Source: Lepidodermella squamata (Eukaryota > Animalia > Gastrotricha). From it: a stretch of 64,000 bases of DNA. Made by a program: the position numbers and the translations under genes. The notes beneath the pieces were generated by a model. The model was not told the DNA's origin. It made no database searches and was given only the letters and a program-made list of their open reading frames with translations. The stretch is taken from positions 2,108,001 through 2,172,000 of the forward strand of contig JBLDXI010000021.1 of assembly GCA_047495785.1 (NCBI GenBank). The letters are read 5' to 3'. Below are positions 36,209 to 63,759 of this stretch, piece after piece (the first letter of the stretch is position 1; the number at the start of each line of letters is the position of its first letter).

Positions 36209-39200
36209 TTAATAGTTGCGATATCCGCCACTTGGCTGTTGGTAGCGCGGAATCGCCCCCGGCATTTGAGGCGGCACCGGTTTCACGAAATTGCCGCTCG
36301 CACTGCTTCGCTGACCGTTCGGTTGTTGCAATGGCGGTGGCGCCATACTGGAGGAATAGCCTGTTTGTGGCGTCTGCCCGGGTGTCGAATACGAAGCGGT
36401 GACTGTGGCGTGCCGCGAGGTCGCATATTGCGGCATCGCCCCTGATGAAGAATAACCGGCATATTGAGCATTTTGGGTGGTGGCATAGGCCGTCGACGAG
36501 CCCATCGAGGGGAGCGAGGCGTGCGAGCTGTAGTTCGAAGGGGTGCTGCCCACCGTTGACCCGCCTCCACGATGGGACGAACCGACAGGCTGGTGCACCG
36601 GGGCAGGCATGGTCTGCGGTAAAGCATCGTCGAAATGGTCTTTGAACCACTTGATCAGCTGATTCAAGTTCGGGAAGGTTTTGGTCCGGAATCGATAACC
36701 CTCCGGGGTAACAGTTACAAGTTCGTGCCTCGGCCGGTTGCGCGGCATGTACGACAACAAAAATTTGCCAGGAAATTCTTTTGACGCAGAGAGAAAGTAA
36801 GGAATTGAGGCGGGCTGCCGGCTCTTTTCATCAAACAACCACTGATCTAGAATATCGGTTTTTCCGCCCTCTGAGTCGCGATAGTATTTGTAACCGGTCA
36901 GTTCTCGAACGTGATTCGCCATTGGCTGGACAAACCTAGCCAGGATTTCATCAAGATCTTCGTATTCCTCATTGCGAACCACCAGTTTCTTGCCAAGACT
37001 GAACACCGTCTGTTTATCACGTTCGATGATGTCGACGTGCTGGTAAATTCCTTCAGCAACCTTCCACGTCAACGTCAAGTGATCGGTGCCATGAGACGAC
37101 GGCCGAATTATCGCCTCACCAGGCGACATGTCCGATAGAAGGGCTTCGCATTCGGCATATGTAATATTCTTGAAGGACGGATGAGCGATGACTCGCTTCA
37201 TATACATCTGCTTCTTCGCGCCACCTTCTTGTTCGTTTTGAGCGCCACTTTCTTCGCCGCCATACGATCGACGGTCTTCCGCCTCGGCTTTATCGTCCCA
37301 ATAAACATCCTTTCTTCGATACTTCCCAGACTTGTCCGCTAATTCAGAAGAACGTGACGTCAAATCAACCTAGAATGTTAAGGAATCATACTTTATACGT
37401 TATACGTAAGCTACGGTAATCGTGTTTTCTAACCTGAAACCGTTCGATGTCGATTTTAGTAATCCGAGCCCAAATTGACATGCCATTGCGAACGCGTTCT
37501 TCAGGATCCTGCACGGGTCGGTCAGAAAGGCTCTTCAATCCGATGAAGCCATTGCAGCCGTTATCGAGGCGGCATTTCACGCCGACTTTGCGGCCCTCGC
37601 AAGACCCGTCGTCGAAGTGCTTCCAAACATCGCCGATCTCCTGGATGACCTTGTAGCAAAATGGGCACTTGAATAATTGCTGGCCGTTCATTTCGAATTT
37701 GACCGGCGCAGCCTCCTCGAGCTCTTGTTCTCGCGGTTTCTTAAACGCGAATCCAACAACAGTGGCTTGGACGAGTTTTCCCTCTTGGAAAGTCTCTGGA
37801 GTTTCCTTCGTCACCAGCTGGAACAACTCAACGTTGTTTATGGGCTTAAAAGGCGGCCGAAGGTCTTTGTACGAGTGGTTCAACTCAGCGCGAATGTCGT
37901 ACAGTGTAGTGTGTTTAGTACCAAAGTTCTGACAAATTAAGGCGGCTTGAAATGTTACTCAAAATGCTAAACTATTGAATAGTTACCTGACGCTCCAACT
38001 CAGCTGCAAACGCATCCAAGTCGAGATCTTTCAGCCTTTCGGGATTTTCCATGATTTTACGAACTGCCTCTCGCTGATTGGTGTTTTCGTCCAACTCAAG
38101 CGCGTCAATCGCCATTTTCCGCGCCCACTCGTAAGCCTCAGGGTGGACACGGGTGGCGTCAAGCTGTTCGACAGGCGATTCAGCCTCTTCATCGTCGTCA
38201 TCAGTTCGATGAGCCTCCCACCATTGCTCCGCCTGGTCGACGTCGATGCGAATAAACCCGGCGCAGTTCAAAAATACGCAGGGACCCATGTTGAAACTGG
38301 TGACTAGTTCAGCCCGAGTCAGTAGCATTCCTCGCGCTTTTATTTGTTTCAAAATGTATGACGCTTTTCGAGGCCCGAGACCGCATATGAATTGCACAAG
38401 GCCCATCATATGCGGGTGTTCGATTACTTCATTCAGATCTACACCGACTTCGTTGACTCGATTGACAAATTCGACTGTTAAATAGTCTAACAACCGGTCT
38501 TGATCAAGCAAATTTTGCAGCGGATGGAATTTTAAACACAAGACATCGTTATCAGAATTGGCTAGGCGGACGAATTCGAGTAGGGGATCGCGAAGTCGAC
38601 GAGCAAGTCCGACGGCGATTTTCAGCCCCGTGGCATGATCACGGTATTCGTGCCTCGACTGGGCTGAATTCGCATAGACCAAAGCAGCGTCAGTTTCAAC
38701 AATCTCGCAATTGATTGCAGCGGGCAGGCCAAGTTCTTGCTGCACTTCAGCCATAAGGCCCACCATGTCTTTGTGGAAGTACATCGAATCACGCGAATCG
38801 ACACCTACAGCAACAACAGTTGGTTTCGTGTCCATGATGAATTGTTTCAGGGCGGCGTAGTCGACATCTCGAGTTTCAGCATTTTTCCTGCCACCAGCTG
38901 ACCACGAAGTTCCGAGGGGAAGATGGTCCAGTAGCTCGCCAGTTGAATTGATAAGAGCAGCGTAACCGGTCTGGCCATATACCGGCGCCTGATAGATGCC
39001 AATAACAGACAAATTGCTCCGGCCACTACCGTAATCGTCATATGAATTGTCGGATGGGTACGGGGCAGGTTTGATTAAATGCATCAGTTTGCTGCGGCAC
39101 TTCTTGTAAATAACTTCTCGCGCTTCATCGGCTAATTTTGTTCGCAAGTCTTTCTCCATTTGCGGGTACAAAAATGATCGAAGCGCCATTTCTAGCGCTG

Positions 39201-41575
39201 CGTTCCTCTGCGAATTCCAGCTTTGAGCAATCGAGGAGAAACCATCGGCTTCGTACAAATATTTGATCTCATCGAAGTATGTTCGGTTGAAACCAGCAGC
39301 GTGGGCTGCCTGCGATTGAGATAAACTATCGAAGCCGGTGGGTTTGTTGACATCGTTGATGTCATCGATAGCGATTGTCATGACGATCAGGCCGTCTTTT
39401 TCAGCGGCTAGCAAGTGCAGGAATTGGTCACCCTCCAACATCTTGATAGGCTTGCCTTTCAAATACTTCATCATGAAACAAGGGTGATTTTCGTCGATTT
39501 CCCGGAAGCCTTTTTTCGTCGGCCGAACAAACAGTTTCGCACGCTCGTGAAAGGCAGATCGAACCACTTTTCGCACAGTAGGATCAGCTGCAATTTGAGA
39601 CGCAACGAGATAGCGAGTGCCCTTCAACACGTCTTCCTCTTTGGCAAAACGAGGACAGATGTATTCGCGAGCAAGCTCAACCGGGTCAATGTCGCATTCT
39701 TCAACTTGGTTCTGCGTGTATTTTTCAGCCAGGTTGGTACCGAGTTGCGCTGCGGTTAAACCGAAGCGCTGAGCAAGCGCGGCTAATCCAGCGCGAACAC
39801 ACATCAAATAGGGAGTGTGGCGGACAGGGTAGCGGAATGAAGGTTCGGAAGGGTTGCCATTGGTAGCGGTTCCGTTTTCGCCGTTTGCTGTTTCCATGGC
39901 TGCCTTCTCCTTATCGGCGCGACGAGCAGCGGCGACGTGATGGCCGTAATACAGACAAAAATGATCGTAAACATCTTCGAATTCTTCCACACTAACAACC
40001 TAGAAATGGGAGATTGCCACAATTAAATTATAAAGCCACCTTAATGTATGTAAAACACACCATTTGCACGCGTTGAATGTCTTCTTCGGTTAGAGGCCGA
40101 ACGTCAGGTGTCAGTTCAACGTTAGCACCAGAATACAAATCGTACTGGTAAGATTGAATTCTCTGCATAAGTTTGACGAGCTGGTCTTTGCGCTGACGCA
40201 AGGCCGTCCATTTCTCATCGTAATGATAAATTCGCCACAAATCGCTAATAGTCAACTCAGGTTCAACGTATTCTTTGCGGTAGAAGGCGATGAAAGGTAC
40301 TTCGAAGTGCTGCTTCCTGATATAATGCAGCGCCTTTTGAATTTTCGGCACGCAACTGTCGCGTTCTTTGGTCCGAACGACTGGTCGCGAATCCGACTCG
40401 CCATGCTGACGTCCATCTGCCCCGTGCTGACCATCGGGGCTTTGCATCGAAATCGGCACGGCGGCGAAGGCGTTGGCGAATATCCATTCGGCCTCCTCGG
40501 CTAATTCCATTTCGTTGTCAGTGTGGAGCACGGGGATGCGGCGAAGTTGAAACCTTTCAGGCAAATCAGCTATTTTGATTTCTTCATCGAATCGAGTGAG
40601 GAAAGCGCGATCCAACTCGGCGGGTTCGAATAGATCCAGAACTTTCATTTTCAGCGGTTTCGGACCACCTTCGCCGTCCTCGCCTTCCTCGCCTTCGACT
40701 TCGCCATCGGAAGCTTCTTCTTGGAAATCGTTGAAGTCGAAATCGACACCAAAGACTTCTTGGGCTTCTCGAAGTTGCGGGTCCATATGGCCGCCGTGGC
40801 GCCGCGCTGCTTTGCGTTGAGCAACGTTTTCTCGCTGAGCTTGACCAGCTTCGCCCTCCTCGTCCGAGACAATGAAACTGTCCTCACCTTCCGAGCTCTC
40901 CTCGCCCTCTTCCGCCTCCTCCGCCTCTTCAGCAGCAGGTTGGAGATGGGCGAGTCGAGGAATAGGGCGGTGTTCGACCTGCCCGGGCTTCTGCGGTTTT
41001 TGTGGCTTTGGGGCAGCGGGCGGCAGGTCTTCAAGGGCGGGTTCGTCATTGTCGTCCATATCATCGCCCTCGAACAGCTCTTGCGCGATTTGCTCACGGT
41101 CTTTATCGTAATGACCTTTACTGCCTTTAGATTTGCCTTTGGAAGTTGAAACTTCGTCGCCCTCCTCGTCAGATTCAATTACAACGCGTTTTTTCTTGGT
41201 TTTCTTCACCTCAATGCCGAGATTCTCGCGAATGATCGCTAAATCTTCTTCGTCGGTTTCAGCGTCGTCCTCAGCGCTACCCTCGCCCTCCGAATCACTC
41301 GCGCTACTTTCGGCTTCGTCCTCAACCGGAGCGTCGTCGACGAAATCAGCCATTTCTTTTCTGAGAGCAGCGTCGTCATCCTCCTCCGCGTCATCCTCAC
41401 TCGAATCTTCTGACGAGCTAAGCTGAGTTTTTCTCTTCTTTGCCGGCTCGCCGCCGTGACTGGTTTCTTTTCGTTTAGCTCCAGGACCGACCGCCCCGCC
41501 GTCTTCAGCCTCCTCTAACACGTCCGAATCAACGTCAGAGTCTTCTTCGGCTTCGTTGTGAATGAAATCCGACAT
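36209..41575 (-). CDS. SUPT6H: Transcription elongation factor SPT6
   Basis: MSDFIHNEAEE, EAQEVFG, DLPERFQLR, EVPFIAFYRKEY, GLGPRKA, ATRVHPEAYEWARKMA, S1 domain, and tandem SH2 (RVIAHPSF, EDLDEILAR). Three coding introns. Confidence 0.97.
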
Positions 41576-41616: not shown

Positions 41617-41740
41617 ACTGGAAATAGAAAATCAGAAGAGTTGTAAATATAACCTGGAGTCGGATAAAAACAAGTCGTTCCATCCTGCGACCCTAGACCC
41701 CTATTTTACACGCTCGTGCACCAGGCACGGAATTCATTTT
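41617..41740 (-). promoter_or_regulatory. Leader cassette copy 1: upstream motif, hairpin non-coding exon and intron before SPT6
   Basis: Homologous to 44580-44732 and 51816-51980. Hairpin 41654-41696 ends CAG|GTTATA; acceptor near 41617. Confidence 0.65.
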
Positions 41741-41789
41741 AACTATACATATACTATAAGAAATGAAATATTCACGGGTACATTTTTCC

Positions 41790-43087
41790 CAATTCGGTCA
41801 ACCTCTTTACTCAGCACTGTTGGTTACTTTATGCCGATCATGCCCCGCATACCTCAACTAATTCACGCACAGAAAGAAATTTCGGGCGCATACTCACATA
41901 CTCACACCTTGCAGAATTGTATCATTCACCAGCATAACACGCGTTTGTTTATCACAATAAACTACTTGGTCGCAATGTCAGATAACTCAGCTAAATATCT
42001 AGCTAGCCGTTTTAACTCAAGGACATCGGACAAAGCAAATACTTCGAATTGGAACGTCGACCTTGCCACGCATGGTTGATTGCGTATCCGGTCGCGTTCG
42101 GATCGCAAAATAGAGCAGCGAACCAATAAGCAGCATGTAGTACGAATCGACTCCAAAGGCGGGTTACCGTCGTCAGCGGCCGATCGTACAGGCTGGCGCT
42201 GAGAAGATCGTCGACACACACTACGATGACGATGGCGCAGGAACACACGGGGGTCTGCCTCGGTCGCCTTCAAGCCAATCTCTACTAGTTAATTAGCCAA
42301 AGTTTCGTTTTGAGCAGCCCGATGAACATTAAAACTTGCCACGCGAGAGCCGGCACGAGTAAGACATCCTTGATGAGCGTTCGATAGGATTCCACCGGCA
42401 GATTAAACGTGATCTGCGCAACGCCATTTTTAGTCACCTTGTATAGTTGAGACGTGTTCACCATCACGCGCGACACACCCGAGTTGCACAGTCAAGCACC
42501 ATATCATATCGCGGCTACCACAGAAATCGCCATTACCACCAGACGCCCCACCCGCAAACATCGCAACTGATGAGGGATTTGTCTCCCTTGGCACAGACGC
42601 GGGCGGCTGATTCGTTCGCGATCTTTGCGGTAAGATCTTCAGCTCCTCGCTGTGGAGGGCAGCGATAACATCCAATGTCGCCATACAGCTTGCGCAGCCG
42701 TGTGCAAGGGGCCCAGATCGTTTGGCGACGCGTGAACATGTAAGCAACTTGCTCGCTCTCAGCTATCGGCTCGCCGATCGCGTCCAGCTGGTTGACCACG
42801 TCAGTAAATTAACGAGAAAACTTGCCAATATCAGCTATATCATCTTCATCGGCATTAAAGCAGTTCTGATTAGCATTCGATATGCATGTTTATGGGGTGG
42901 GACCGCGAAACGGGCGCGCAATACATCCCATGTTGCCGCCGAGTCGTCTCGGACACCAGGAACATTTTCGAGCCGCCCATTGATATGGCCGTTTTGATAG
43001 TCCCAAACATCGTCGAGAAACGGGTATTTCGGAGGATTCGACCTCACGAAGAAGTCGCTCGACCGAAGCCGCTCGTAGACCGGTTCT
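41790..43087 (-). mobile_element. Internally deleted Ty1/copia remnant
   Basis: In order: gag (ATWDVLRARF...VNQLDAIGEPIAESEQVAYM), protease region (VLDCAT, IKDVLLVPAL), RT (EADPRVF, VVCVDDLL), RNase H (NQPCVARST...ALS, VYCD.Q, VRELV). No LTR recognised. Confidence 0.8.
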
Positions 43088-44228
43088 TGCTTGATCTTTC
43101 ACTGGAGTGACTGCTCCAGCGATACGCCAATCAAGTGTGTCTGGGATGTCCTTGAGTCCGCGGAGATTGTGCTTCGCGGCGTTGAAGGGCTGAGCGTTGG
43201 GTGACTGTTGCGTGCGGCGGAAGCCTAGCATCACCTTGCGTTCGTCGGACGTTTTGTCAGCCAGGTGGTTGATGGCAACCTTGTAGGTCTTGCCAGCGCG
43301 GTTGGTGGAGTGGATGAAGCGGTTGTTGTGCGTGAAAATTGACTTGTGCTTGCTCGCTTCTTTCTCGTCAGAGTATTCACGGTTGTGTTGCTTCTTGAAG
43401 GACTCGAACATCTCTTCGTGGTGCTTGTTCTTGCCGTTGATGTACTCAGCCATCGGGTTCATTTGCGCCAACTGGTCGGAGGAGACGCCAGGGCCAGGGA
43501 AACCACTGCAGGTAATGTTAGGCGGGACAACGAAGACCGAAGCATCGGGCTGGGTAGCCGAGAAATACTTGAACCAAACAACTGAAAAATTCATAAATAA
43601 ATGAAAATCAACTGCTTAAACGGAAATTTACCATATTTGTCGTAGTGGCTGCCGAACAGACTGACATAACCCATGAGCTCGAAGTAAAACGGCGTGGCGG
43701 TAACCGGATCGACGACAAAGGTGTACTACAAACGATAAAGACAACTATTAAGATACACATTACGAATATTATGAAATAAACTCACAGTATTCTTCTTCGA
43801 ACCGTCAACCTCAACATGGCGCCATTGATCAGCTGAATGGCCTTCGAAATCAACAGTGCCCATGTAGTCGAATTGGCTTAGATCAGGAAGACCGGGTTGC
43901 AGAGAGACCGGGATGTCAACACTGCCGTTAACCTGGAAGCAGGTCAGCTGGTTGAGAACAGTCTCGGTCGTCATGTATGCCAGCTTTACCATGGTTGGTG
44001 GGTTGGTAGCGGCGAATTGCATGGTCTTGACCATTCCATCGTAGTAGTCAACGCGAGAACGCATGTTTTTCGGGTCGTAGAACAAGGTGAACTGTTCGTG
44101 GATTTCGGCATACGGCAAGTCGATGAAACCTGAAACAATGTAGGCGTCGTAATTGGGCGGAGCCTTCAGCCCTGTCGGCTTGAGCCGACGACTAACAGGG
44201 ACGCCAAAATGGCGGCAAATTTCATCAT
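43088..44228 (-). pseudogene. 26/29-kDa proteinase / CfaD-like cathepsin L-family pseudogene (5' half)
   Basis: LPYAEI, RSRVDYYDG, I29 prodomain (F..FKK.H.R.Y...NHLAD), LDWRIAGAVTPVKDQA, then a break before the catalytic Cys. Frameshift just after the signal peptide. Confidence 0.85.
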
Positions 44229-44579
44229 TTTCCCAAAAGACCTAATTTTTGAAAATAATTATAAAATAATCAATTTCCGTCAAATATGCAGTGATCTAAG
44301 AAAAAACCTTACTAATTAAATGCTAATGAAATTATGTTAAACAAACCTGTCTGCCGGAGAGCGCGCATTCACCGGAGTGAGTCGTGCAGCAAGAACTCTT
44401 GGTCTCCTTCGGCCAACAGGAGTCAAATGCGACTGACCTCTGCCAAGGGGCGTAGTTCAATAATTCAGGCGCTCAAATAAGGTCCAGCAGCTGCGTGCTC
44501 ACATGTTCTTAAAATGTAAGAACTTGAGATTTCCAGCTTAAAGTTGCAGTCGCGCTGGTAGCGTGTTATTAATAAAATC

Positions 44580-44732
44580 TAGAGTCGAAATAGAAACAGC
44601 AAAAGATTCATTATGAAAAGCAATATATGAAACACTTACCTAGGATCGGGATAGAAACGCCAAAAGAGCCCGTTCCTACCCGCGACCCTAGACCAGTTTT
44701 ACACGCTCGTGCACCAGGCACGCGATTCATTC
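44580..44732 (-). promoter_or_regulatory. Leader cassette copy 2 (hairpin exon 44640-44691, donor GTAAGT)
   Basis: Homology to copies 1 and 3; 20-bp stem. Confidence 0.65.
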
Positions 44733-44959
44733 CAATTTCAGATAAATGCCAGGCTCACAAATCGTTGCTTCAAGTATGCTGCCAACACAAAAAATCATCA
44801 AATAAGGCAAAATCTATGGCTTTTCGGCCATAGTTCAGCGAACTGAAGTGTCAATGGCAAATTGATTAATTTTTCGCACGAGGTTCCTGCCGCACTTTGC
44901 CTTCGCTGTTTAGGCGCACATTTGTTCCCAAGAAACGAAAAAGATCACCCGATTGCCTT

Positions 44960-45400
44960 TTACGCGCCCTTTTCTATTTTTCATGGAGCATCCAACTTTG
45001 CGGCGTGTGAGATTGCGGTTATCAGATTAGTCCGCAATTTGAAGCCGAGAATGTGATGGCAAGTGACGCTTCAGTCCGCCGTAGCAACTGCAAGGTACGT
45101 CAACTTTCCCGTTCGCATCGACAGCCGCCTTCAAAATTCAGAAAAATAAGATCGCGGATGGCCAAGCGGTGACGATCTTGCTTTTCGACCCGGCCTTACT
45201 GTGAGTAGTCATGTTGGAACTGGTCTGATTAAACCAAGACGTGATTCAAGCTTTTTTCGCGGGCAACCACCATGCCGAATTTGCTTGACACCTCGTCACT
45301 AGAGCCTTCAGATTCATCGTTCGAATTTCTCGAAGGAACGCTAGTCTCACGCCTTACCCCTTCCAGCCACTTCATATCCCCTATGCGAAAGCCGAGATGC
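44960..45400 (-). mobile_element. Decayed MULE/Mutator-like transposase C-terminus (SWIM finger), copy 1
   Basis: KWLEG...SVPSRN, and a frameshifted CSC.GGLK...CHHILG (intact in copy 2). Confidence 0.55.
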
Positions 45401-45404
45401 TCAT

Positions 45405-45520
45405 GAACAACGTTATCAAGAAACAACGTTATCAAGAAACAACAAGGAACAACAAGAAACAAGAAACAAGAATCAAGAAACAAGAAAACAAGAAACACAA
45501 GAAACACTCAACAACAACGA
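45405..45520. repeat. Degenerate (CAAGAAA)n tandem repeat
   Basis: About 10 imperfect units; absent from the paralogous site near 55.35 kb. Confidence 0.85.
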
Positions 45521-47177
45521 ACGCCAGTTAATCTAGGATAAAATTAGGTTCAGGGAGACATTTTTCAGCTTTGGAGCCCTAGAATGATGTATGTTTCAAA
45601 ATTGGAGTTGGAATAGAGTGGTGAATGGAGTGACAATTTCATTTGAAGTATTTGTTACCGTATTTGTTCCTAAGTTATCCAGTAGGATGGTTCCATAAGT
45701 ACCAAGAGTTAATAGTAGCCCATGTCAAGACGTCAGCGTCAAGCAAATCGCCCATAATCGGCCATTGTGATGATGTACGTACTTTTAAAGGGGCGCGCGC
45801 CTCTTTGGGGTCGCGAGGTGGTAGGCTTCTCATATACATGGTTACAAGTTCGCAAGATTTGACTTAAGAACGCGCCGAATCCGAACCATCCTAAGTTCGC
45901 TCATTAAGCATAAGAGTTAATAAGCGTAATAATTACGTAGGGTTATAAGAATAAGCAAGTAGGGTGATTATATTTTATTCAATTTAATCAATTTAGGCAC
46001 CTAATTTGCCTCTTTGTCTTTTTAGATTGTTATTATTCGTTGAAAATGCCAGAAGTTGACCATGAAGCCGACCTTCCTGTGACATTACACTCAATGTTCC
46101 CGGTATAAACCAAACTCTTTCGGAGAAGTCACAACTTGACCAAGGCTATGTTAGTCTAAGGTCTGCGGCTGTGCTAGATGCTCAGCGATCAGCCTTCAGA
46201 AAGAACAGTCAATCTCGTGTCAATGGCTACAAACATCGAAACTACTTCGAATTAGAATAGTAGCGTCATCCAGATTGAGATGCCCGATTTCAGCCAAACT
46301 CAAAACTTGCGAGGCTCCTGTGCGAGCGGTAATAGATCGAGTTTACCTACGGAAGCGCTCAAATGGCTTGCGGTCAAAAACTAAGCAAACCACAGTCTCA
46401 TAATTGTGAGAATTTGTTATCTCTCATTAGCCTCGGATTTCGTTCCAACTGAATCTATCGAGTTGATCGAGGAGAAAAACGGCAAGCTTCCCATCCCGAT
46501 TCGACGATATATTATCACGTTCTACCAATTATCGATATTGCAAGGTTGAAGAACGCAACCTTAAATTGGATCCCCGCGAAGTGGCATTGGCTCTAAAGTG
46601 GGAAAATATAGGAGTCCTCATTGGAGGTTGGCTCGTCGAGCTGAAATCGACTAATACTCAAGAGATGATTTGGCGACTCTACTTGAATTTTGGCTAAACT
46701 AATCTGGGTAAAACGGCGCACACAATGTCCGATTTGATGCTAATGCACGTGGCCTCGCTTGAAGACTGGGTTTGCTCCGGTGCATAACATACGCTGTTTC
46801 CTTCAGCACATGACTCGACAAAATGTTGGCGGTAAGTCTGACCTCAGAGGAAGTTAATGGCTCGAACCGAGATTTATGACAGCGGCCGAAGCAAGCGACG
46901 CCGAGTCTGTCTTAAAAATTTCGTTGAGTTCGATGACCAAGTCTCTGCAGACTCTTCCTTAACGTTCTCTCAGAGTCGTTCGTTTCGTTTCACCGCCGCT
47001 GAAAACGATGACGTGAGGCTATTAATTTCTCTGTAAAGAAATGGAAGCCCGTCGACAACCTGAACCTTCTGCGAAAGTTCATGGCAAGTCAGTCTTAATA
47101 TATTGGCCAAAAAATTTCCGCGGCGCAAAGATACATCTACCATTCGTAGAGCTAAGACTTGCTTAAAAAACACCTAA

Positions 47178-47903
47178 GTTGCCGCTTACAAAAAGGAGTA
47201 GGACGGCCAGAGGAAAACTGGCGAAGGTACAGAGGACTCGGGAGAAGCTTTTGAGGCTGACACTGTTAACGGCATCATCGACAGCGTTCTGGGCTGTCGC
47301 CCTGTCATGCGCCTGCCGCGTGTTGCAGAATCGTCTATCGTCAACTCGGACATCGAGGAGGCTGACGATGCCGCAACTAAAATGCGGAAAATTGAGAAAA
47401 GTAACCTCACCGGCAACGATTTGCTGTCGCAGTTGGCATCTATGCAACAACAGCAGCTGGATCTGCAAAAGGAGCAGATGGCCCAAGAACTGCGCTTGGA
47501 AGAGCGCCGAATCGAATTTAGGTATATTCTTAGGCTGATAAGCGGCAGAACGGCACGCTGCTAGAAATGGCCAAGCTATTTGCTAGCAGTAATTGAAACT
47601 TAGCGATTTCGGAAAATCTGAGTTCGGCTTAGACGATTATCACGCTCGGTAAAGAATTGATTATCGAAGAGAATAGCATTGAATAAAGTGATTGAACGTG
47701 TGAATAAAGAGTTCTTACTATTTTTGCCCAAGTTCTTACGATTGAAAAATCAAGAAATTGACCTCGTAAATAGGCTCCCAGCGAAATAATCTTCACTTCA
47801 CGTGTTCACACTACACAATTTTAAATTCTATTTAACGCACTTCAACGAGCACGCGACCAGTTGATGCATTTTTTGCTTCACTTCAACGTAGTGTGAAACA
47901 GCC
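47178..47903 (+). mobile_element. Harbinger-like insertion (partial)
   Basis: Absent from the paralogous site at ~58095-58105. Flanked by TAA. Right end GTGTGAAACAGCC resembles a Harbinger TIR. Contains a Q/E-rich coiled-coil ORF fragment. Confidence 0.5.
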
Positions 47904-49555
47904 TAATGTGTGAACGTTGGTGAAAGATGGTGGAAAATTTGAAAATATAAGAATAAAATATTGAATTTCGTAAAATCCGATCTTTGGAATAGCATGAGCT
48001 ATCGATGAAAAGTAGCAGAGAGTACTTGTAAAGTGTTAAACTAATGCTCAACATGTTATGCTCTAAGACTGCAAAAAGGCTTCTTGAAGTGAAAAATGTA
48101 TGCTAAAATATTTTTCAATACCAGCTGAAATACCGCTCAGAATGTGCAAAACTGCTCAACGACTGCTCAAAGGTTGCTTAACGGAAAGCTTAACAGTGTA
48201 CAATGAAATTGAGCGCATAATATATCCATGCATAATCAAATCAACGGGGATATAATGGCACAATAATTAATAAAAAATTAGTTTCAGCAGCTTTTCAGAA
48301 CGAGTGTAGGACAAGATAATAGAAGATCTTGTATCAATCATCAATCATAAAATCAATCATCAATTAAAATCAAACCGCAAAGGAAACCTACTGAAAACGG
48401 GATCGAAACATTAGCAACTCCAAATTCCACTAAAATAGCAAAAGCCATCCCCACATCATCGTAGCCGGCCAAACGACCCGCAACCCGCAGTGTGCGATGT
48501 GGTTGAAAAGCTTAAAGTGGTTGAAGGAAAACGAAGGGATGGCTTGATTCTTACCAGCCAACAGACAATCAGTTGAAATCGCTTCACGCAACCTCAAGAC
48601 AGAAGTACCTACATCGACCGAACTACAATATCCGTTTACAACCCATTACAACACTTCGTCGATACTTATACGCGAAAAGCGCTGAGTCATGTGACGATGC
48701 GTACATCTACGTTTCGGAATTCGACTTGGCAACGAACATATTTTGCGCTGTTCCAAGTACGGTCAAACGGCTAGCGAAAGTAGGAGAAAAGTTGAGAAGA
48801 TAGTAGGCGCCGTTGATGCAACCTGCACAACTGACAACTGCGGCTACGCGCTTATCAAGCGAGACATATGTTGAATTCACGTTTACAACGACAGAATTTA
48901 ACAGTCTGCGAACGCTGTTCACTGACATGTGGTCGCGGGTGGAGGCAGCAAAGGCGTGTTTTGGTGCAATCCAGCAACAATAGCTCGACAGCAGCGACAC
49001 CTGGTACGAATGGTTCGCTCTAGGATGCCCATCCACAAATAAAAATTAATTGACCAATGGGCGCGTTAAGAGGATGACACGCTGCGCGAGCTTCTACCGG
49101 TAAAACAACTAGCCGAAACATGGCGGGCGGTTGGTCAGCCTGTCAGCCTTTCATGACCAAATAGCAAATATTTTACGATCTCACCTACAATTCAACTGGT
49201 TCCGGACGATTTTGCTGGTGCTGAGCTCGCCTAATCTCCGTGAATACACGCACCTTCGCTCGTATGAAGGGTAAATCTTTAAAATGAAAACATAATAGTT
49301 CTATCAAGCTGTATCTAGATTTGCCGGGCTCGAGGATTAGTCAGTTTCAAGTAGCCACTGACACTTTTTAAAGCAGTACTACATTTACCACTATCTTAGG
49401 CTGATGATGAGAAGCAACAACCTTGCTTTGCCGCTTCACCTTCAATAGCCCCTTCAAACAAACGCCGAATGGAACTTTCAAACCGACGAAGAAAGACGGC
49501 GCCGAAAGGACTCACTGTTGCTTGAACTATAACTAATAATGCTAAGAAACTAACG

Positions 49556-50776
49556 CTCGCGCCGCCGTCGATGATTTTTATTGGGTTTGGGGCTGTCCTG
49601 TAGCCATCGCCTCGCTTGACGGCACGCATGTCGAAATACGGGCGCCGTTCGAGAATGCCGGCGGCCATTTCAGCCGAAAGAGCCGCTACACCACGGTTTC
49701 TCAGGTGTTAGTCGGTTCCGACCTTCGGTTTTTTCGGTCGAAAGCGTTAACGGGGACGCTACCCGGCCGATTGGCCATAAATGTGTGCATTTCCTTGAAG
49801 AATATAAACTTAGCGGCTCCCTCACCCGTCTTCTTGAGCCTTTTCGCCTCATCGTTATATTCACAAATCAAGCGCTTGACCTTATTCTTGCATTGATCAT
49901 CAGAGTGGAAAACCCAGATTGCTCAACAGAAAGTTCGTTGTAATCTCAACTGGGCCCTTAGCGGTAACGTAATTGTGTTGGTCGTCCATGAGCGAGATGA
50001 TGGTCGAAGTCTCAAAATCGGACACCCGACTAGCAGCCCCCCTTCTTCCTGCCCATCCTCGACCTGCCTTCCACACTTAACCGGCACCTTCCCAACATCA
50101 CTCTTGTTAACCGCATTAACCACAGCCTTCACCTTAGGCGTAGAGTCCAAGGGCCCCTCACCCGAACCTCCTTCCTCACCACCGGCAGTTACAGCAGAAA
50201 CGCACCGTTTGACAGCAGCAAGTTTAGCAGATATTTGACAGAATCAAAAGCACGAAATTAGATCGAATTGAGAAATAATTGGGATAGGCGAGGTACAATG
50301 AACGAATGAAAGAAGAAGAAAAAGAAAACCTCTTATCTGCACTCATGCGCTTTCTCGCGCGCACAGAAGGTAAACGACTGAGAAAATCACAACGCGTGAA
50401 AACTCACGTACGCGCTACCCAGGGCCCAGGGCCACAGCTGACAAAATGTCGTAATGTCGTAAAGTTAATCATTCGTCTAAATGTCATCTTATTCAGTTAA
50501 CGATCTGATCACCGCATATAACGAAGGCCCCTTTTGGAACTGGGAAAGAACTTTTCAAAGGTGAGCGGATAACTTTCCTAGGAGAGCGAGACGTAAAATT
50601 AGAACCGTTAAATAGGCGGGAGTTTAATTTACCAGGATGATAACAAGCCGGACATCATCGAGCAACATGCGAGGAAAAAATTGATAACAAACGGACATTT
50701 TTTATCATTATTCGCTCCGCATTTACACAGCCAACGAGAGCCAACGAGAAGGAAAACTGCTCGTGTAAACGCGCCT
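49556..50776. mobile_element. Deletion derivative of the 19.8-22.6 kb Harbinger family
   Basis: 49556-49735 matches ~19785-19960 and is joined directly to 49738-50042, which matches ~22150-22470. Same terminus TGCTCGTGTAAACGCGCCTATT. Confidence 0.85.
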
Positions 50777-50989
50777 ATTGAAGTAACTAAACGCACGCAT
50801 TGCGAAAGCAGGGAGTTGCTTTGCCGCAATAAGCAAATTTAAGTGCAACCGAAAACATATCACCTGGGCAGTGAAACAAAAAAATATTAAATGCTTAATA
50901 ATACCAGCAAGATATAAGCCTGTGAATCATGGAACATGACTGAAGACAAGGAAACGGCGCTGAATACATAAGAATATACCTAACTTGTA

Positions 50990-51230
50990 ATAAAATGGAT
51001 TATATCCCTAACATTAGGCAATCCATGCGTGGCGGCATTATCGAAGTCGGTAGATTAATTGAAAAGCAACGTCTTAATTACCCAGGTAATACATTAAGGA
51101 TACAGACCTCTGTCGCCGAGAAAGGTGAACTGATACCATCAGGGCAGTACACGTAGATGCGGTTGAAATGGCATAATGAGGAAAAAACCGTCGGGGCCCG
51201 TGGCAGACCTCATAAAGATGGAAGTAACAT
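50990..51230 (+). mobile_element. RTE-like LINE 3' fragment (copy 1)
   Basis: RLNYPG..IR...RGRP motif pattern; paralog at 63760-64000. Confidence 0.5.
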
Positions 51231-51498
51231 AACCGAAATTTCCAAAACTGTTGATAGGACATTTAACGAAACAACTTAAGATCGAAAGATCGAGACGAAT
51301 GGCGTAAAATAGTAGTCTTTGGAAGTTCAAATTCTATAGCAAAAGCGAGATTTTCTCGGCTATGGAGGCGGGTGAAATTTTTTTGGTTTGTCTTGCATTC
51401 ACCTTCCTCAAATCCCGAAAGGGTAAATATGCAGGGAGGAGAGATAAAACTTTCAATTTCAAATTCAAATTCAATAACAAATAAACGCTTGAACATAC

Positions 51499-51693
51499 CT
51501 TCAGAAGTTCATAGATCACCGTTGGAGTAAGATCGGGGAACGGAGCTATCCGCAGAATTCTGACTAAAAGCGCCCAAACTTGAGCCACGGTCACAGGTCT
51601 GGACCCATTTGGTGGCAACGGAACTTGCGCGACGAAAATTGTTGCAAACAATGTAACAATACCACTCATGCGCTCAATTGTGCGCTCATTCAT
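51499..51693 (-). pseudogene. GLE1: GLE1 (mRNA export factor) exon fragment
   Basis: ERMSGIVTLFATIF...VWALLVRILRIAP...TPTVIYELLK fits the Gle1 C-terminal domain pattern RMSG...W.WL..ILN..P...T..L..FL.V. Ends in a GTATGT donor. Confidence 0.7.
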
Positions 51694-51815
51694 GCGCTTA
51701 TTTTTTCCAGGCGCTCAAATAAGGTCCAGCAGCCGCGAGCTCACATGTTCCTTAATTTTAAGAACTTCCCAGCTTGAAGTTGCAGTCGCGCTGTTAGCGT
51801 GTTGTAAGTAAAATC

Positions 51816-51980
51816 TAGAGTCGGAATAGAAACGGCAAAAGATTCATTATGAAAAGCAATATATGAAACACTTACCTAGGATCGGGATAGAAACAGCAAA
51901 AAAGCCCGTTCCTACCCGCGACCCTAGACCCTTTTTCAACACGCTCGTGCACGCAATTCACCAAGCACGCAATTCATTTC
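51816..51980 (-). promoter_or_regulatory. Leader cassette copy 3 (hairpin exon 51876-51927)
   Basis: Homology to copies 1 and 2. Confidence 0.65.
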
Positions 51981-51998
51981 AGTTTCAGATTCAGAAAG

Positions 51999-52165
51999 CC
52001 TGGCTCACAAATCGTTGCTTCAAGTATTAAACAGTCTTGTTTTGAGAATTGAATGCTTAGGTTTAAAGCATTCGTTTATTCACATTAGATTACTCAAAAT
52101 TTCTAAGCATAATAAAGCGCGACAAAAATACGATTCAAATTTAAAACAACGATTTGTGAACCAGG
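51999..52165. mobile_element. Small MITE-like element
   Basis: ~22-bp imperfect TIR CCTGG(C/T)TCACAAATCGTTG; only the left arm survives in the paralog at ~44750. Confidence 0.65.
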
Positions 52166-53258
52166 TTCAAGACTCTATAAGATGAACTATAAACAAGTTC
52201 ATTTTTCAATAAAAACAAAGCACTAGCAAAAGAATACATCATTTTTGATTGAGCGGCCAGTTGCAAATCGCCGCAACTTCCGTATTTATAAAGTGCCGCA
52301 ATGTTGAAACAGAACCGGAAGACGCGTCTAATTTCGGCAGGTACGACGCTTTCAATAGCCGCGCTAGTTTATCGAACTGACGGCCGTATGTAGCATGAAG
52401 CTGCTTCGAGCAAACCTAGTAAAAACAAAATAGATCATTCATTCCATAACTTTTTGAATCTGTGTATCGATTTTCAACGGTTTTTACAAATTTATTTCAA
52501 GTGGGAATCCTCGCGAAGTTGAGAAGCATCGAAGAATGGGCAAAAGAGACGAGAAAGCTTGGTGGAGAGCCTGGCTGGAAAAAGCTCGATGAGTTTATCG
52601 ATGTATTTAGAGACCGAGTTTCTCGAAAATCAGGCACCGAGAATAATTGACGCAAGCTGAACTCCACAAGATTGAGCAGGAAGATACCTAGTCAATGCAA
52701 CGTGGTCTACACAGAACACCAAACGACGTTGCATACGAAGAAGTATTCGCCGTTATGATTCCTTCAAGCGACTGAGACAGTCGATATCATTCAGAATAAG
52801 ATTTGGAAATCAAGTGATATCAGCTATTCAGGCTATTGAACGAAACAAAAAGCGAATTCACCTGTGTGTGCCTTATAAAAAGCTCATAAAAAGCATCAAT
52901 GCGATGTCTATTCCTCCGAGTACTATACCAAATTCGTCTAATATGTTGTGCCTATAGCGCCGCCTGGCGAGGGCCTACTATAAATAAAACAAACACAACC
53001 AAAACAACACACAACACAAAAATTCATCAAATAAGGCAAAATTCATGGTTTTCGGTCATAGTTTAGTCAACTGGCATTGTGTCATGGCGAATTGATAAAT
53101 TATTCGCACAAAATTGTGGCCGCGCTTTTCTTTTGCTTTGCTGTTTAGGTACACCTTTGTTCCGAAGAAACGAAAGTGATCACCCGATTGCCTTTTACGC
53201 GCCCTTTTAAATTTTTCACGGAGCTTCCTGCTTTGCGTCATCTGAGATTGCGGTCATT

Positions 53259-54969
53259 TATTTATTTATTTATTTATTTAAGTGCATAAATCCCAAAGTT
53301 GAGAGCACGATAACAAAAAGTTTCAAGTGGTATAAAAGTGGCAGAAAATTCGAGTCATGTTTCAATCCGTTTCAAAGTTTGATAATAACAAAACAAAAGA
53401 TGTACAAAATTTAGCATTTATATGATTTGAGCTTAGGTTTAGTCAACAGAAAATTGTAAACAAGTTGTCGGCAAGAGTGAGCATTGTAACAGATTTTGAA
53501 GCCGCAATCGCATCGTGGGGGAAGGCTAGTATAGGAAGTAATATCAACTGGGCGATGATGAGGACAATGAAAGTGGAGTGGTAAATTGTTAAACAAGAGA
53601 GGCCCTGCGTAACTAAGAGAGGCCTGGCCGTAGTCAAGTCTCATAGTAGGAATTTTGAAGCTGAGACGTGAAGAACGAGTAGAAGATGGAGGATTAGGAA
53701 CAAAAATAGATTTTATAACATCGGGTGCATCACCAGCAAGACATCTGTACATTAAGGTGGCAATGTGCACGTTTCGCTTGCCCTGAAGGTCAAGCCATTT
53801 GAGCTCGTCGCGTAGAGGAGAAGGGTCGGCACAATCCGGCGCATTCATGACAATTCTGACAGCCTTATCCTGCAAAGATTGTAGTTTTTGAAGAGAAGTC
53901 GGACAGGCTTCATTTAGAATAATATCGCAGTACTGTAAGTGCGAAAAAATCAAGCCATTTGCCATTGATTTCAGGCAGTCCCTATTCAAGCCATTCTTTG
54001 CCGCTAATTGAAGCGCATAAATACCTTTTCGAGCCTTAGAGCAAGCTTTCTCGATGTGTTCCTTGTAGAGCAGTTTTTCGTCTAAAGTGAAGCCTAATAA
54101 ACAAATCGAATCTGTCTGTTCAATTGAGACCCCGCCTATAGTAATATTAATTTTGCCAATTGATTTCAGTGTAACGATCATTAGCTGGGATTTTTTGCCG
54201 TTAACTTTGAGACAGTTAGAACCTAGCCATAGTACGAGATTGTCAAGGTCTTTTTGAAGAACGCTTTCAATTTCAGTCACATTTTTAGCCGAGAAATAAA
54301 TGGTGGTGTCGTCTGCATATTGAATAACAGTAGACTTGAGTGATGTCAGAGGCAGTTCATTAACGTAGATCGTAAATAATAAAGGGCCCAAGGCGGAACC
54401 CTGAGGTACTCCGAATTCTAAGCTTGCAGTCTGAGAAAATTGTCCATTAATTTTGGTAATTTGCTTGCGATCCGTAAGATAACTAGTTAAAATCTCGATT
54501 GCCGCTTCATCAAAACCCGCACTGCGCAAGGAGGACAAAATACCGGTCATGCTGAGAGTATCAAAGGCCTTGCTCATGTCAATGCTGACTACAACCGTCG
54601 TGAAGCCCTTATCAATAGCACAGCGCCAATCATTTGTCATTTTCGTAAGACAAGTCTCGGTTGAGTGATTTTTCCTAAAACCGAACTGAGAGGGTGAAAT
54701 GAACTGAATCTTACGTAGATAATCCTTCCTCGATGATCGCTAATACCCTCTGTAGCCCCAGTTAAAGTGACCTTCTCTGGCGGATACGAGGTGCAAAAAT
54801 AATCCAACATGGTTTTAGATTCAGGACGCGTGATAGTCTTCCTAAAGGATAAGTCTAGTCCATGAGCGCGAATCAAATCCAGAAAATTGCTCTCGTTCAC
54901 CGAATTCATGAGATCAATATTGAAATCTCCACCGATGACATAGTTTTGCGCGTTAGGAGGAGTCAGAGA
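53259..54969 (-). mobile_element. 5'-truncated, internally deleted CR1/L2-group LINE
   Basis: APE motifs GGDFNID, LDY, SDH; RT motifs DMSKAFD, GVPQGSALGP, YADD; (TAAA)n tail; TSD GGTCATT at 53252-53258 and 54970-54976; empty site at ~45015-45035. Confidence 0.92.
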
Positions 54970-54976
54970 GGTCATT

Positions 54977-55330
54977 AGGCTAGTCCGCAATTTGAAGCCG
55001 AGAATGTGATGGCACACGTGATACTTCAGTCCGCCGTGGCAACTACAAGCCACGTCGACTTTCTTGCTCGCATCGACTGTCACCATCAAAAATCTGAGAA
55101 ATAAGATCGTGGATGGCCAAGCATTGACGACCTTGCTTTCCTTCGGCCCAGCGTTACTGGGAATAGACATGTTCGAACTGGTTTGATTAAACCAAGACGT
55201 GATTCAAGCTTGAAAGATGAGTTACTTGTTTTTTTCGTGGACAACCACCATGCCCAATTTTGCTAGACACCTTGTCACTAGAGCCATCAGATTTATCGTT
55301 CGAATTTCTCGAAGGAACGCTAAATTGGGG
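54977..55330 (-). mobile_element. Decayed MULE-like transposase C-terminus, copy 2
   Basis: SWIM finger ACSCHGGLKYHVCHHILGF; the continuation lies beyond the LINE at ~53170-53250. Confidence 0.6.
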
Positions 55331-58300
55331 CAGTCCGCGGAGACAAGCCCGCCATCCACATTCGGCCACCCTTAAAAACTTTGTTAGTAAATCTAGGGTT
55401 AAGTTAGCGTCAGGGAGAGCGACAGCTTTTAGCTTTGGAGCCTCTAAAATAATGGATGTTTCAAAATTGGAGTGGTCAATGGAACGACAATTTCATTTGA
55501 AGAGATATACCCATCGTATGTGTTCCAATAGTTGCTTAGTCTCCCATCTCTAATAGTAGTCCATGTCAAGATGTCAGCGTCAAACAAATCGTTCATCTCT
55601 AATAATTGCCCCGTGTGATCGTGTTCGTACTTGTGGCGCGCACCCCTTTGCAGTCGCGAGGTAGGCTTCTCACATAGGATAGCTTTAGTTGCCAACACAA
55701 ACGCAAGCCGTTTGCCGCAAACTTGGACTGAACACGGCTGTTGATTGCTGATTTTCAATCTTAATACAGTGATTTTGCTCAAACTTTGCTGTGAAGTGAA
55801 ATAAACGTGAATTGAATCGCCCGTCTCTAATCAACACCAATCTCTATTAGTAGCCTACTTTTTAGGACTTTAGGGGTTGAAAATTTAATAGCCCGGGCTG
55901 CCATTGGAACAAATACGGTAATCGGTAATCGATCATAAAATAGAAATATATAGCGACATAACTGCCTCGGAAACAAAAAGTTCCCGTACAACGCCCGTTC
56001 GAAGGGATGAGATATTAATGTTTTCATTGGAGCCTGGGCCGTTTTTTAAAAACGCGTGTAAAATATATGCATTCGTGGGTTTGGCCAGCGTTCAGCTACT
56101 AAGACAATACTTTTTCTGGGCTCTATAAAAACCGCCGCACTAACTAAATTATGAGGCTAAACTGAAGACTGAAGCATATGCGAGAAAAGCAGACAAACGA
56201 AGACAAACGACTCGGAATCGATCGACGAACATGGTTACAAGCTCGCGAGATTTGACTCGGCCAAAGATATAGTAAGGCCAAAGAAAATGCTAAGAAAGAT
56301 GTCACAAACTATTTAAAAGCTAACAAACGTAGATTTACTATATCAAACATAAAGATCGTCTTGGCAAAACTGAACCAACATTTTGAAGAAGAGTCTGGAG
56401 ACCGCGCCTAATCCGAATCATCCAAATTTCGCTCATAATGCAATTCGCTCATTATTAAGAATGATTAAGTAGGGGGATGAGATGAGTTGACTATTTTTTA
56501 TTCAATTTAGTTCATTTAGGCGCCTAATTTGCTTCTTTGTCTTTCTAGATCCTTATTATTCGTTGGAAATAGCAGAAGTTGACCACATAGCCAACCTTCC
56601 TGCGACACTACACTCAACGTTGCCGGAAGAACTCTTTCGGAGAAGTCACAACTTGACTAAGGCTATGGTAGTCAATGGGAGGCTGCTCAATTCCGGTACC
56701 GAGTTTGCTTTGCTGGATGCTCAGTCTTCAGAAAAAACAGACAATGCCGTGTCTATGGCTATAAACATCGAAACTACTTCGATTGTTAATAGTAGCGTCG
56801 TCCAGACCGAGATACCCGATTTCAGCCAAACTCAAAACTTGCGAGCCCCTTGTTCGTGCGGTAATAGATCGATTAGAAGCGCACCCACGGAATCGCTCAA
56901 GAAGCAAGAGCGGCTTGCAGTCTTTAAGCAAAACAAAGTCACATATTTTAGCACAATTGTGAGTATTTGTGATCATTTTCCTCGCATTTCGTTTCACATG
57001 AATCTATCGAGTTGATCGATGCGAATCGGCAAGCTTCCCGTCCCAGATTCGACGAAATATTATTAAGTTCTACCAATTATCGATTTCATGGAATATTGCG
57101 AAGTTGAAGAACGCAACCTTAAATTAAATCCCCGCGAAGTGGCATTGGCTATTAAGTGGAAAAATATAAAGAGTCCTCATTCGAGGTGGGCTACAAAATA
57201 AAGGCTGAGATCGACTAATACTCAAGAGATGATTTGGCGGCTCTACTTGATTGCTTCACTGCTTCACACAGAAAAAACTCTGAATCGACCTTAAGTCTAA
57301 AATCCAGTTTGGCTCGCTACAACCGAAGACAGCTTGAGCTATCATCATTAGGCCATCCGCATTCTGCAGAATGAATAGAGCAGAGTCGATGCTGCGGTCA
57401 AATAGAAGGAAGAAAGTGTTTACGTTAGTGATATCTAATTTCTAGACGTGCTTAATCGATTATTTGCAGACTACCTGGCGAAAACAGGCAAAAGTGGCTC
57501 TGCAGCTTTTACGGCGGAGGCTTCCAAACTGGCTGATGATTATGCAACGGCCTGCAGTAACAGCCCGACAACTTTTCCTTTCATTAAAAGGGAAGCCTTT
57601 TGACACACGCAACCTGGGCAGGTTAAAATTGCCGCAAGATGACAAGAAGTTTGGCTATACTACTCCGCGTAAAAAGGCGCACACAACGTACGATTTGATG
57701 CTAATTAACCTGAACTAGCTGGAAGAATTGATTTGCTCCAGTGCATAAAATACGTAATAATTTTACCGTATTTTTCAATAACTCTTGAGTGGTTTTGTTG
57801 CAGCCGAGAAACGGTACTACATCCTTGCCTCCCTAACAGCAATGTTTCCTTCAGCGAATGCTTCGAAATATTTTGGCTGACCTCAGAGGAAGTTAATGGC
57901 TCGAACCGAGATTAGTGACAGCGGCTGAAGCAAGCGACGCTGAGTCGTTTGTTTCCTTTCACCGCTGCTAAAAACGATGGAAAGAACCTGAACCTTCTGC
58001 AAAAGTTCATCGCAAGTCAGTCTTGGTATATTGGCCGAAAGATTCCCTGGGCGCATACATCTACCATTCGTAGAGCCAAGTACTTGCTTAAAAAACACTT
58101 ACAATGTGTGAACGTTGGTGATAGGTTGAAACCGATGGTGGTAAATTTGAATAAAATATTGAATTTCGAATAATCCGAGTTTTTGAAGAGCATGAGCTAT
58201 CGATAGAAAAGCAGCTGAATACTTGGTGAAGTGTTTAGCTCATGCTCAACATGTTATGCTCTAATACTGAGAAAGGGCTTTTTGAATTGAAAAATGTATA

Positions 58301-63045: not shown

Positions 63046-63368
63046 CCGTAGTTACCGAAATACTAACCCGGGCTTATACAAAAATGATACCTCGAAAAAT
63101 GGGGAAAAGTAGGCTTCTATTCAAGACTAGGCTTCTGTTTGAGATAGGCTTATGCAACGGAGACCTGACGTTACTTTCCGTCTTTCAATCTCAAAACTCA
63201 TCAAAACTCATCAAAGTATTCATTATTAGTTATTAGCTAGGTCGTCTAATAGCTGGAAATCAAGACTAATAAGGAAAGCTTTCACTAAAATCATCATAAA
63301 CAGCAGATTATTACATATCTTCACGCATTTTTCGTTTTTAATTTCGGCCTATATTTCGGTAACTACGG
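63046..63368. mobile_element. Tc1/mariner-pogo-type MITE
   Basis: Perfect 17-bp TIR CCGTAGTTACCGAAATA with TA flanks. Confidence 0.85.
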
Positions 63369-63759
63369 TAGTTGGAATATTTCGTTTCGATCTAATGGTG
63401 TCAGGCTCAAGACTCAATATATGATTACGGGAGGCGACCCGAAGACAAACAACAAATAAAATTCAAGTACTATTAGAGGCATACTCTTGAAAATTGAAAG
63501 CTCAGTCAACAACGCTCATCCAAACTCATTCAAGTAACTAAAAGCACGCCTTCCGAAAGCAGGTAGTTGCTTTATCGCAATAAGAAAAAAAATTTCCAAC
63601 CGAAAGCATATCTCCTTGGCATTGAAACTAAAAACATTGAAATGCCTAATACCAGCATGGAGTATGACTGAAGACGAGGAAACGGCGCTAAATAAAAGAT
63701 AATATCAATGAGTGTGTTGTATCTAGGAAAACAATTTAATGTAATAAATTTATGCAAAA

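Follow-up and report, generated by a model that had tools for sequence, protein, structure and literature searches.

We analysed 64,000 nucleotides (nt) of the gastrotrich Lepidodermella squamata (contig JBLDXI010000021.1, positions 2,108,001 to 2,172,000 of the forward strand, assembly GCA_047495785.1; hereafter the window), in which one short module with the look of a promoter followed by a leader stands on the minus strand in front of three different genes: SPT6 (copy 1), a fragment of a cathepsin-type cysteine protease gene (copy 2) and a lone exon of GLE1 (copy 3). We found that copies 2 and 3 are parts of one old head-to-tail duplication with a single new junction. Overall, the cassette is probably the 5′ module of the gene that comes after GLE1 on the minus strand, multiplied by local error-prone repair or replication restart and not by transposition. 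The original prediction, made from the letters of the window, had offered two explanations, a mobile promoter/leader cassette or serial duplicates of an ancestral operon head (GLE1, cathepsin and SPT6, for example) that decayed by different deletions.

Searches of the window located the module at the three places predicted (41617-41740, 44580-44732 and 51816-51980), all on the minus strand. In each copy AATGAAT and the 22-mer CGTGCCTGGTGCACGAGCGTGT come first; some 10 nt farther on, a leader that begins with CTAGGGTCGC leads to a GT, and a short gap then runs to an AG. Within the leader, GGTCTAGGGTCGC is the same in all three copies; a GT comes after the leader and an AG stands farther on, in line with the donor, short intron and acceptor that had been proposed and that we treat as predicted splice sites. 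Copies 2 and 3 each have an intron-like GT..AG gap of 61 nt, the corresponding gap of copy 1 measures 36 nt, and the other introns that we read in this genome are 50-61 nt long. Copy 1 (41618..41751) has its 22-mer at 41708-41729, its leader at 41696-41654 and its gap at 41653-41618. Copy 2 with a 113-nt tail occupies 44466..44777 (22-mer 44701-44722, 52-nt hairpin leader 44691-44640, gap 44639-44579, tail 44578-44466), and copy 3 with a 107-nt tail occupies 51708..52027 (hairpin leader 51927-51876, gap 51875-51815). Copies 1 and 2 share the 22-mer without a difference, and dinucleotide shuffles of the window yielded no match to it; in copy 3 it carries one C>T change and is split by a 16-nt internal duplication, the duplication that had been noticed before. 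Over module and tail, copies 2 and 3 share 91.5% identity. Copies 1 and 2 are 78% identical over 85 nt, with about 85-110 nt alignable and both the 22-mer and a 13-mer identical; copy 1 lacks the 113-nt tail and ends 42 nt 5′ of the SPT6 start codon.

We then asked how far the module extends through the genome. A BLAST search of the 121-Mb assembly with 171 nt of the module (E<=10) returned nothing besides the three copies, and a pattern search of the whole genome allowing up to 3 mismatches found no others either. All three lie within 10.4 kb on one contig, and no terminal repeats, target-site duplications or defined termini were seen around the module in a repeat search of the window and on inspection of the junctions. 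The genome-wide BLASTN comparison that had been suggested as a check thus excludes a high-copy repeat, and a mobile promoter/leader cassette is rejected on the count of three copies, all of them local.

To define the relation between copies 2 and 3, we compared the window and the 20 kb beyond it with itself. Copies 2 and 3 run on into 7 kb of common flank, and the comparison gave 13 colinear blocks, 44466-51674 against 51708-64262, arranged head-to-tail. Unit A (44466..51707, minus strand, 7,242 nt) and unit B (51708..64262, minus strand, 12,555 nt; position 64262 is L006 position 262, about 260 bases past the end of the window) are the two copies; the duplicated segment begins in mid-exon, in the penultimate exon of GLE1, and ends 113 nt past the module. 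Ungapped, the inner blocks are 82.4% identical (2459/2986). Unit B comprises the 11.7-kb last intron of the intact GLE1 gene, the GLE1 last exon and copy 3, and it has been enlarged by insertions, among them reverse-transcriptase open reading frames (ORFs) of the long interspersed nuclear element (LINE) type at 53411..55170 (minus strand, RVT_1 match), which are absent from unit A. Unit A in turn lacks the 985 nt that hold the GLE1 last exon in unit B (44777/44783 against 52027/53012). The units consist partly of dispersed repeats, and most blocks match the partner unit alone. A dispersed repeat of about 460 nt lies at 50782-51238 and 63528-64008 and has dozens of copies on many contigs; a separate repeat of about 100 nt lies at 47804-47908.

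The sole new junction of the duplication is 51707/51708. Reading along the minus strand, the module tail ending in ..GAGCGCCTG is followed by a 33-nt filler (51675..51707) and by the GLE1 exon from AGCGCATGAGTGG. In the filler, pieces of the word AGCGCA, taken from the two flanks, recur in a stutter as partial repeats of AGCGCATGA / GAGCGC, and AGCGC is present in both parental sequences at the breakpoints, giving 5 nt of microhomology. The fourfold GAGCGC(A) that had been read at this junction therefore stands as a repeated word, but the four words are AGCGC and just three of them are GAGCGC; the intact GLE1 has one. Microhomology repair, which had been proposed on that basis, is borne out by the shared AGCGC together with the stuttered filler, and the scar looks to be of the polymerase-theta end-joining type. 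The filler also creates an in-frame ATG, which opens a 119-amino-acid ORF at 51334-51693 (minus strand) running from MNERTIER through the GLE1 exon into intron read-through; this ORF is probably meaningless, the matching last exon being deleted in unit A.

GLE1 has two matches in the genome, the intact gene past the window end and the fragment in the window. The fragment is a 5′-truncated copy of the penultimate exon (51499..51674, minus strand) that starts in mid-exon at ..RMSGIV and matches PF07817, so that the lone GLE1 exon noticed behind copy 3 is real. It is 94% identical to the intact exon over 258 nt, including a 128-nt identical run. Searching for the intact gene, as had been advised, placed it at the outer edge of the same duplication: it lies on the same strand, at L006 from about 1725 down to 87, and continues in the window at 52415-52239. 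Its last exon (52239..52415, minus strand) has a normal acceptor and a stop codon at 52241-52239 (TGA), and a tblastn match to frog GLE1 (E 0.002) continues the alignment of the penultimate exon; a word search with GLE1 returned only a frog protein, with 32% identity. This exon lies directly upstream of copy 3, and the GLE1 AATAAA at 52080-52075 precedes copy 3 by about 100 nt and the AG of the module by about 260 nt. The last intron of the intact gene (52416-64000 and L006 1-86) is filled with repeat and LINE debris. As a possible target duplication we considered the residues VCS at both ends of this intron, but their DNA differs (GTATGTTC against GTTTGCTC) and the candidate was rejected. A tandem duplication that broke inside a GLE1 exon accounts for the leader standing before a single exon of that gene, and no decay of an operon is needed. 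The GLE1 piece behind copy 3 is thus a by-product of the duplication and not, as had been suggested, a decayed operon copy.

The protease piece behind copy 2 is the 5′ fragment of a paralog of the 26/29-kDa type (43089..44295, minus strand, 1,207 nt) and is 93.3% identical to an intact gene on contig C33 (L026 5650-7371), which is the intact cathepsin locus that the original prediction had recommended looking for. The C33 gene belongs to the 26/29-kDa proteinase / digestive cysteine proteinase 1 family, with best relatives of the protease about 50% identical, and combines the N-terminal domain, I29 and Peptidase_C1 that mark the family; the window fragment does not have this combination. It contains 67 nt of upstream sequence, the signal peptide, the N-terminal domain, the I29 propeptide and both introns, and stops just before the catalytic CGSCW. 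Pfam found I29 and no Peptidase_C1 in it, a 7-nt deletion after the signal peptide breaks the frame, and no in-frame start was found upstream of the fragment; the cathepsin is broken, as had been stated. In the C33 gene the frame is open through both introns (586 codons from stop to stop), so an ORF caller blind to exons would return a wrong protein with intron-encoded residues.

We further asked whether this fragment had ever been under selection, computing the ratio of nonsynonymous (dN) to synonymous (dS) divergence directly on the alignment of the two genomic copies; the exons of SPT6, GLE1 and the protease were searched one by one. Exons of the fragment and of the C33 gene are 96-97% identical (91.5% for the short exon 2), against 82-86% for introns and upstream sequence, and differences at codon positions 1/2/3 number 5/5/30. 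The Nei-Gojobori estimates are dS 0.146, dN 0.013 and dN/dS 0.09, with 10.5 nonsynonymous changes in both lineages together where 58.7 are expected under neutrality (P 5e-15). The neutral parts of the fragment diverge from C33 to the same extent as units A and B from each other. These values rule out that the fragment was junk since birth, and a dN/dS of 0.09 indicates that the paralog was functional during most of its existence. Gene conversion confined to the exons, as the source of the high exon identity, is likewise ruled out, third-position divergence (dS 0.146) being equal to intron divergence. A retrocopy is excluded, since the fragment still has its two introns (in the parent 56 and 52 nt long) and lacks a poly(A); from the retained introns it follows that the piece was copied as genomic DNA. 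Of the 8 amino-acid differences, four arose in the window copy and affect positions that do not vary among eight outgroups, which fits a short recent spell without constraint. We infer that a working protease paralog long stood behind copy 2 and was truncated only recently, when patches were pasted in at both cuts; alternatively, a paralog now lost or unassembled may have been the recent source of the piece, copied here along with the patches.

An I29 propeptide-like inhibitor gene was also considered, the fragment having I29 without a peptidase, and was rejected on the frame closed by the 7-nt deletion. Like the I29 inhibitors CTLA-2 alpha, crammer and BCPI (PMC4089206), the fragment keeps I29 and lacks the peptidase domain; unlike them, it retains the large N-terminal domain and its frame is broken. 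A full-length gene truncated only recently would explain the selection signal as well as or better than such an inhibitor.

The surroundings of the fragment form a mosaic. Downstream of copy 2 there follow, in order, the 113-nt tail, a 12-nt filler (44454..44465, minus strand), a 158-nt patch from contig C24, the protease piece, an 81-nt patch from contig C15, a stretch of 1,258 nt and copy 1. The C24 patch (44296..44453, minus strand, 96.8% identity) holds part of an exon and a whole 50-nt intron and ends at the AG of that intron; its source is a single-copy Harbinger-type transposase gene with DDE_Tnp_4 and HTH_Tnp_4. The C15 patch (43010..43090, minus strand, 80/81 identity) has a 2-nt GC microhomology with the cathepsin end, comes from a coding exon adjoining a riboflavin-kinase domain, and is read in a different frame in the window. 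The patches differ from their sources by 3.2% (C24) and 1.2% (C15), about at or under the heterozygosity of about 3% reported for the species, and by this dating they would be young. Apart from the GLE1 junction, the junctions of the mosaic are blunt or have 2 nt of microhomology, so that overall they show 0-5 nt of microhomology and fillers. The GC-rich (52%) stretch at 41752..43009 has no second copy in the genome, no Pfam match on its ORFs and no peptidase remnant. Neither a remnant of the peptidase domain nor a GLE1 3′ end was found before copy 1 by sensitive blastn, tblastx and tblastn searches.

SPT6 itself (coding exons 36209..41575, minus strand, ATG at 41575-41573) is intact and single-copy. 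Its four exon ORFs match the Pfam families SPT6_acidic, HTH_44, YqgF, HHH_7, S1 and SH2_2, the SPT6_acidic match being weak (21.5 bits, under the Pfam cut-off of 24.4), and the genome has one SPT6 locus; the domain set and the single locus agree with the intact SPT6 described behind copy 1.

A promoter or leader role of the module is suggested by its position and by its pattern of conservation. The 22-mer is intact before SPT6 and before the long-selected protease and is disrupted in the orphan copy 3, and conservation that tracks function in this way supports a regulatory role. Moreover, module and tail differ between copies 2 and 3 by 8.5% (26/306), against 17.6% (527/2986) in the rest of the unit; this lower divergence is the pattern expected if one copy was constrained and the other free. 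The AG of the module could serve either as a cis or as a trans-splice acceptor.

Taken together, the structures can be arranged in three steps. In the first, which is old and whose mechanism we infer, a block with the protease paralog would have come between the module and SPT6, leaving about 110-150 nt of module on both flanks: copies 2 and 1 are similar host sequence of that length on either side of the protease block, about 78% alike and differing by indels. Copy 2 would from then on have served the protease and copy 1 SPT6. The second step, also old and directly visible in the alignment, is the tandem duplication of about 7 kb from the middle of the GLE1 penultimate exon to 113 nt past the module. 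It crossed the long last intron, the last exon and the 3′ end of GLE1 and was sealed on the AGCGC microhomology with a stuttered templated filler, orphaning copy 3, which points into the truncated GLE1 exon, and leaving GLE1 whole in the upstream unit. In the third step, whose structure is seen in the mosaic and whose youth follows from the patch divergences, the protease gene would have lost its peptidase half and its upstream link, short patches from other chromosomes would have been pasted at both cuts, and the 7-nt frameshift would have come afterwards. The serial local duplicates of the original prediction are thus right in outline: on the minus strand GLE1 was followed by a cathepsin paralog that once worked and then by SPT6, these two each behind a module. 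The GLE1 piece as a decayed copy is not retained.

Several observations weigh against this reconstruction. The old tandem duplication and the much younger junction of the C24 patch have the same breakpoint within 0-12 nt, which serial independent events do not predict. With only about 110 nt shared and the 113-nt tail absent, the origin of copy 1 is a reconstruction, and the 1,258-nt stretch before it matches nothing else in the genome. The 36-nt gap of copy 1, shorter than the introns of 50-61 nt, speaks against a predicted cis leader. The 128-nt identical run in the GLE1 fragment needs an extra assumption, probably gene conversion. The protease duplication could have run from C33 to this locus or the reverse. 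Finally, the assembly was probably made from phi29-amplified DNA, which is able to create chimeras.

As to function, the module could instead be an intercistronic or outron element of a polycistronic unit (a HemK-like gene, GLE1, the protease and SPT6) with its AG as a predicted trans-splice acceptor, which would leave the origin by local duplication as it stands. The start of copy 3 so soon after the GLE1 AATAAA, the close packing of the genes on one strand and a gap in copy 1 that looks too short for a cis intron agree with such an arrangement. The distance of about 260 nt from that AATAAA to the module AG does not, and the conserved 22-mer resembles a protein-binding site more than a splicing signal; we regard this reading as possible, if on the unlikely side.

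A single complex replication-restart event with multiple template switches, of the microhomology-mediated break-induced replication (MMBIR) or chromoanasynthesis type, might have made all the old features at once. A fork would have stalled at one site in the tail and jumped back into GLE1, which gave the tandem unit. It would then have stalled a second time at that tail site, copied the protease gene off a different chromosome, and resumed at the beginning of the module to run on into SPT6. That both units end at the very same tail nucleotide is what this scheme would give; the neutral divergences are also of one order (17.6% for units A and B, 14-18% for the protease introns with dS 0.146, and 22% over 85 nt for copies 1 and 2), and the junctions have the expected 0-5 nt of microhomology with fillers. 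Simple re-entry, however, would have copied the tail, which is absent from copy 1. The C24 and C15 patches are, at 3.2% and 1.2%, far less diverged than the protease introns, so that one or more later events must be assumed in any case, and we consider the single event unlikely.

Two events far apart in age broke at the same tail nucleotide, and the module may accordingly be a recurrent breakage site, a structured promoter-proximal element whose 20-bp hairpin and G-rich tract stall replication, seed template-switch repair and so spread the module itself. We hold this idea as quite unlikely; if true, one product of the process, the protease gene, lived under the module for most of a dS of 0.15. 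The start of the leader is G-rich in all copies, with GGG, GGG, GG and GGG within about 20 nt (44660-44691, 51896-51927 and 41675-41700, minus strand). It could form an imperfect G-quadruplex, which by pure speculation might be linked to the recurrent breakpoint about 180-220 nt downstream.

The hairpin also bears on a small-RNA reading, in which the module would encode a variant spliced-leader RNA or else a hairpin RNA, for instance a microRNA precursor, and its neighbours would be incidental. The leader of copies 2 and 3 forms a strand-specific hairpin of 52 nt and 20 bp that ends exactly at the GTAAGT donor, with energies of -29.5 kcal/mol (z -5.7) in copy 2 and -31.3 kcal/mol (z -6.9) in copy 3. 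These two copies have the same stems and differ at three positions, all in the loop, as a small RNA would have it. In copy 1, the copy next to a live gene, the hairpin is weak and degenerate. Rfam gave no match to the module at the gathering score or at E<=5, and neither hairpin arm turned up in the supplementary files that accompany a published survey of small RNAs in the species. Twelve U2 small nuclear RNA (snRNA) genes that we compared have in common a CCAGAAC-type box near -35 and a ATGCAAAT-type octamer near -75, and neither is present in the upstream motif of the module. The U-rich stretches 3′ of the donor are not diagnostic of an Sm-binding site. With only three copies, all local, a small-RNA gene is very unlikely.

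The two young patch junctions could be artefacts of phi29 amplification or of assembly. The probable source assembly was made from phi29-amplified DNA (PMC11660948), at most 1 chimera per 10 kb is reported for multiple displacement amplification, and the patch divergences fall within the reported 3% heterozygosity. Against this, Alvis flagged no chimeric contig in that assembly, which has 83x HiFi coverage (PMC11660948), and random chimeras are not expected in a consensus. Inserts of 81 and 158 nt are moreover unlike the usual inverted chimeras at the kb scale, and the old features, 6-22% diverged from their partners, cannot be in-vitro products; we find the explanation highly improbable. A transposon or a Helitron/Pack-MULE-like carrier that moved the module and captured gene fragments is barely credible: fragments from three other contigs do form a chain beside copy 2, and one source is a Harbinger-type transposase gene, but the module with its three local copies and the mosaic are each unique in the genome, none of the terminal repeats or target duplications looked for was seen, and the 158 nt from C24 come from the interior of a single-copy gene and not from an element end.

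The reading by local error-prone repair finds parallels in known systems. In C. elegans, the tandem duplications made by polymerase theta have junctions with microhomology or insertions, and templated insertions are the hallmark of this enzyme (PMC7368036). The kb-scale tandem duplication described here, with its 5-nt AGCGC microhomology and an insert of partial flank copies, is of the same kind. Typical templated inserts copy sequence close by; the inserts of 81-1,207 nt found here are longer and come from farther away, on other chromosomes. In a Drosophila yakuba survey (PMC5460883), tandem duplications that cut across genes make chimeric or promoter-recruiting structures. Our locus is similar in having breakpoints inside GLE1 and in the 5′ end of the second gene, which put the module of the second gene before the 3′ part of GLE1, and in that the parental genes survive at the outer edges (intact GLE1 and SPT6). 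It differs in age, being old (about 17% neutral divergence) and not a segregating variant, in the chimeric product, which seems dead in unit A without the GLE1 last exon, and in the extra, shorter copy of the module.

The locus is a new instance of known mechanisms and changes nothing in what is known of them. It offers a well-preserved and datable natural case of error-prone break repair moving a 5′ module before other sequence, in a barely studied lineage. Side by side it holds a tandem duplication of the polymerase-theta type, a paralog that selection maintained behind a duplicated module before it was destroyed, and inter-chromosomal patches. For annotation, the cathepsin fragment and the GLE1 exon should not be taken as genes, and the 11.7-kb last intron of GLE1 is likely to be missed by a caller tuned to 50-nt introns, the other introns being 50-61 nt.

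Some neighbouring features were also recorded. In SPT6, where the S1 exon gives way to the SH2 exon (37363-37390, minus strand), we found a single in-frame GT..AG; it spans 22 nt, which is odd for a spliceosomal intron. The source gene of the C24 patch (L030 309-2201, minus strand, C24 about 4926150-4928040) is intron-bearing, of the Harbinger/PIF type with a long serine/proline-rich N-terminal part, and may be a domesticated transposase. U2 snRNA genes are numerous (at least 47), and contig C15 carries clusters of them. ORFs with an NPPY methyltransferase motif (HemK-like; L006 2213-3142, minus strand) immediately precede GLE1 on its strand.

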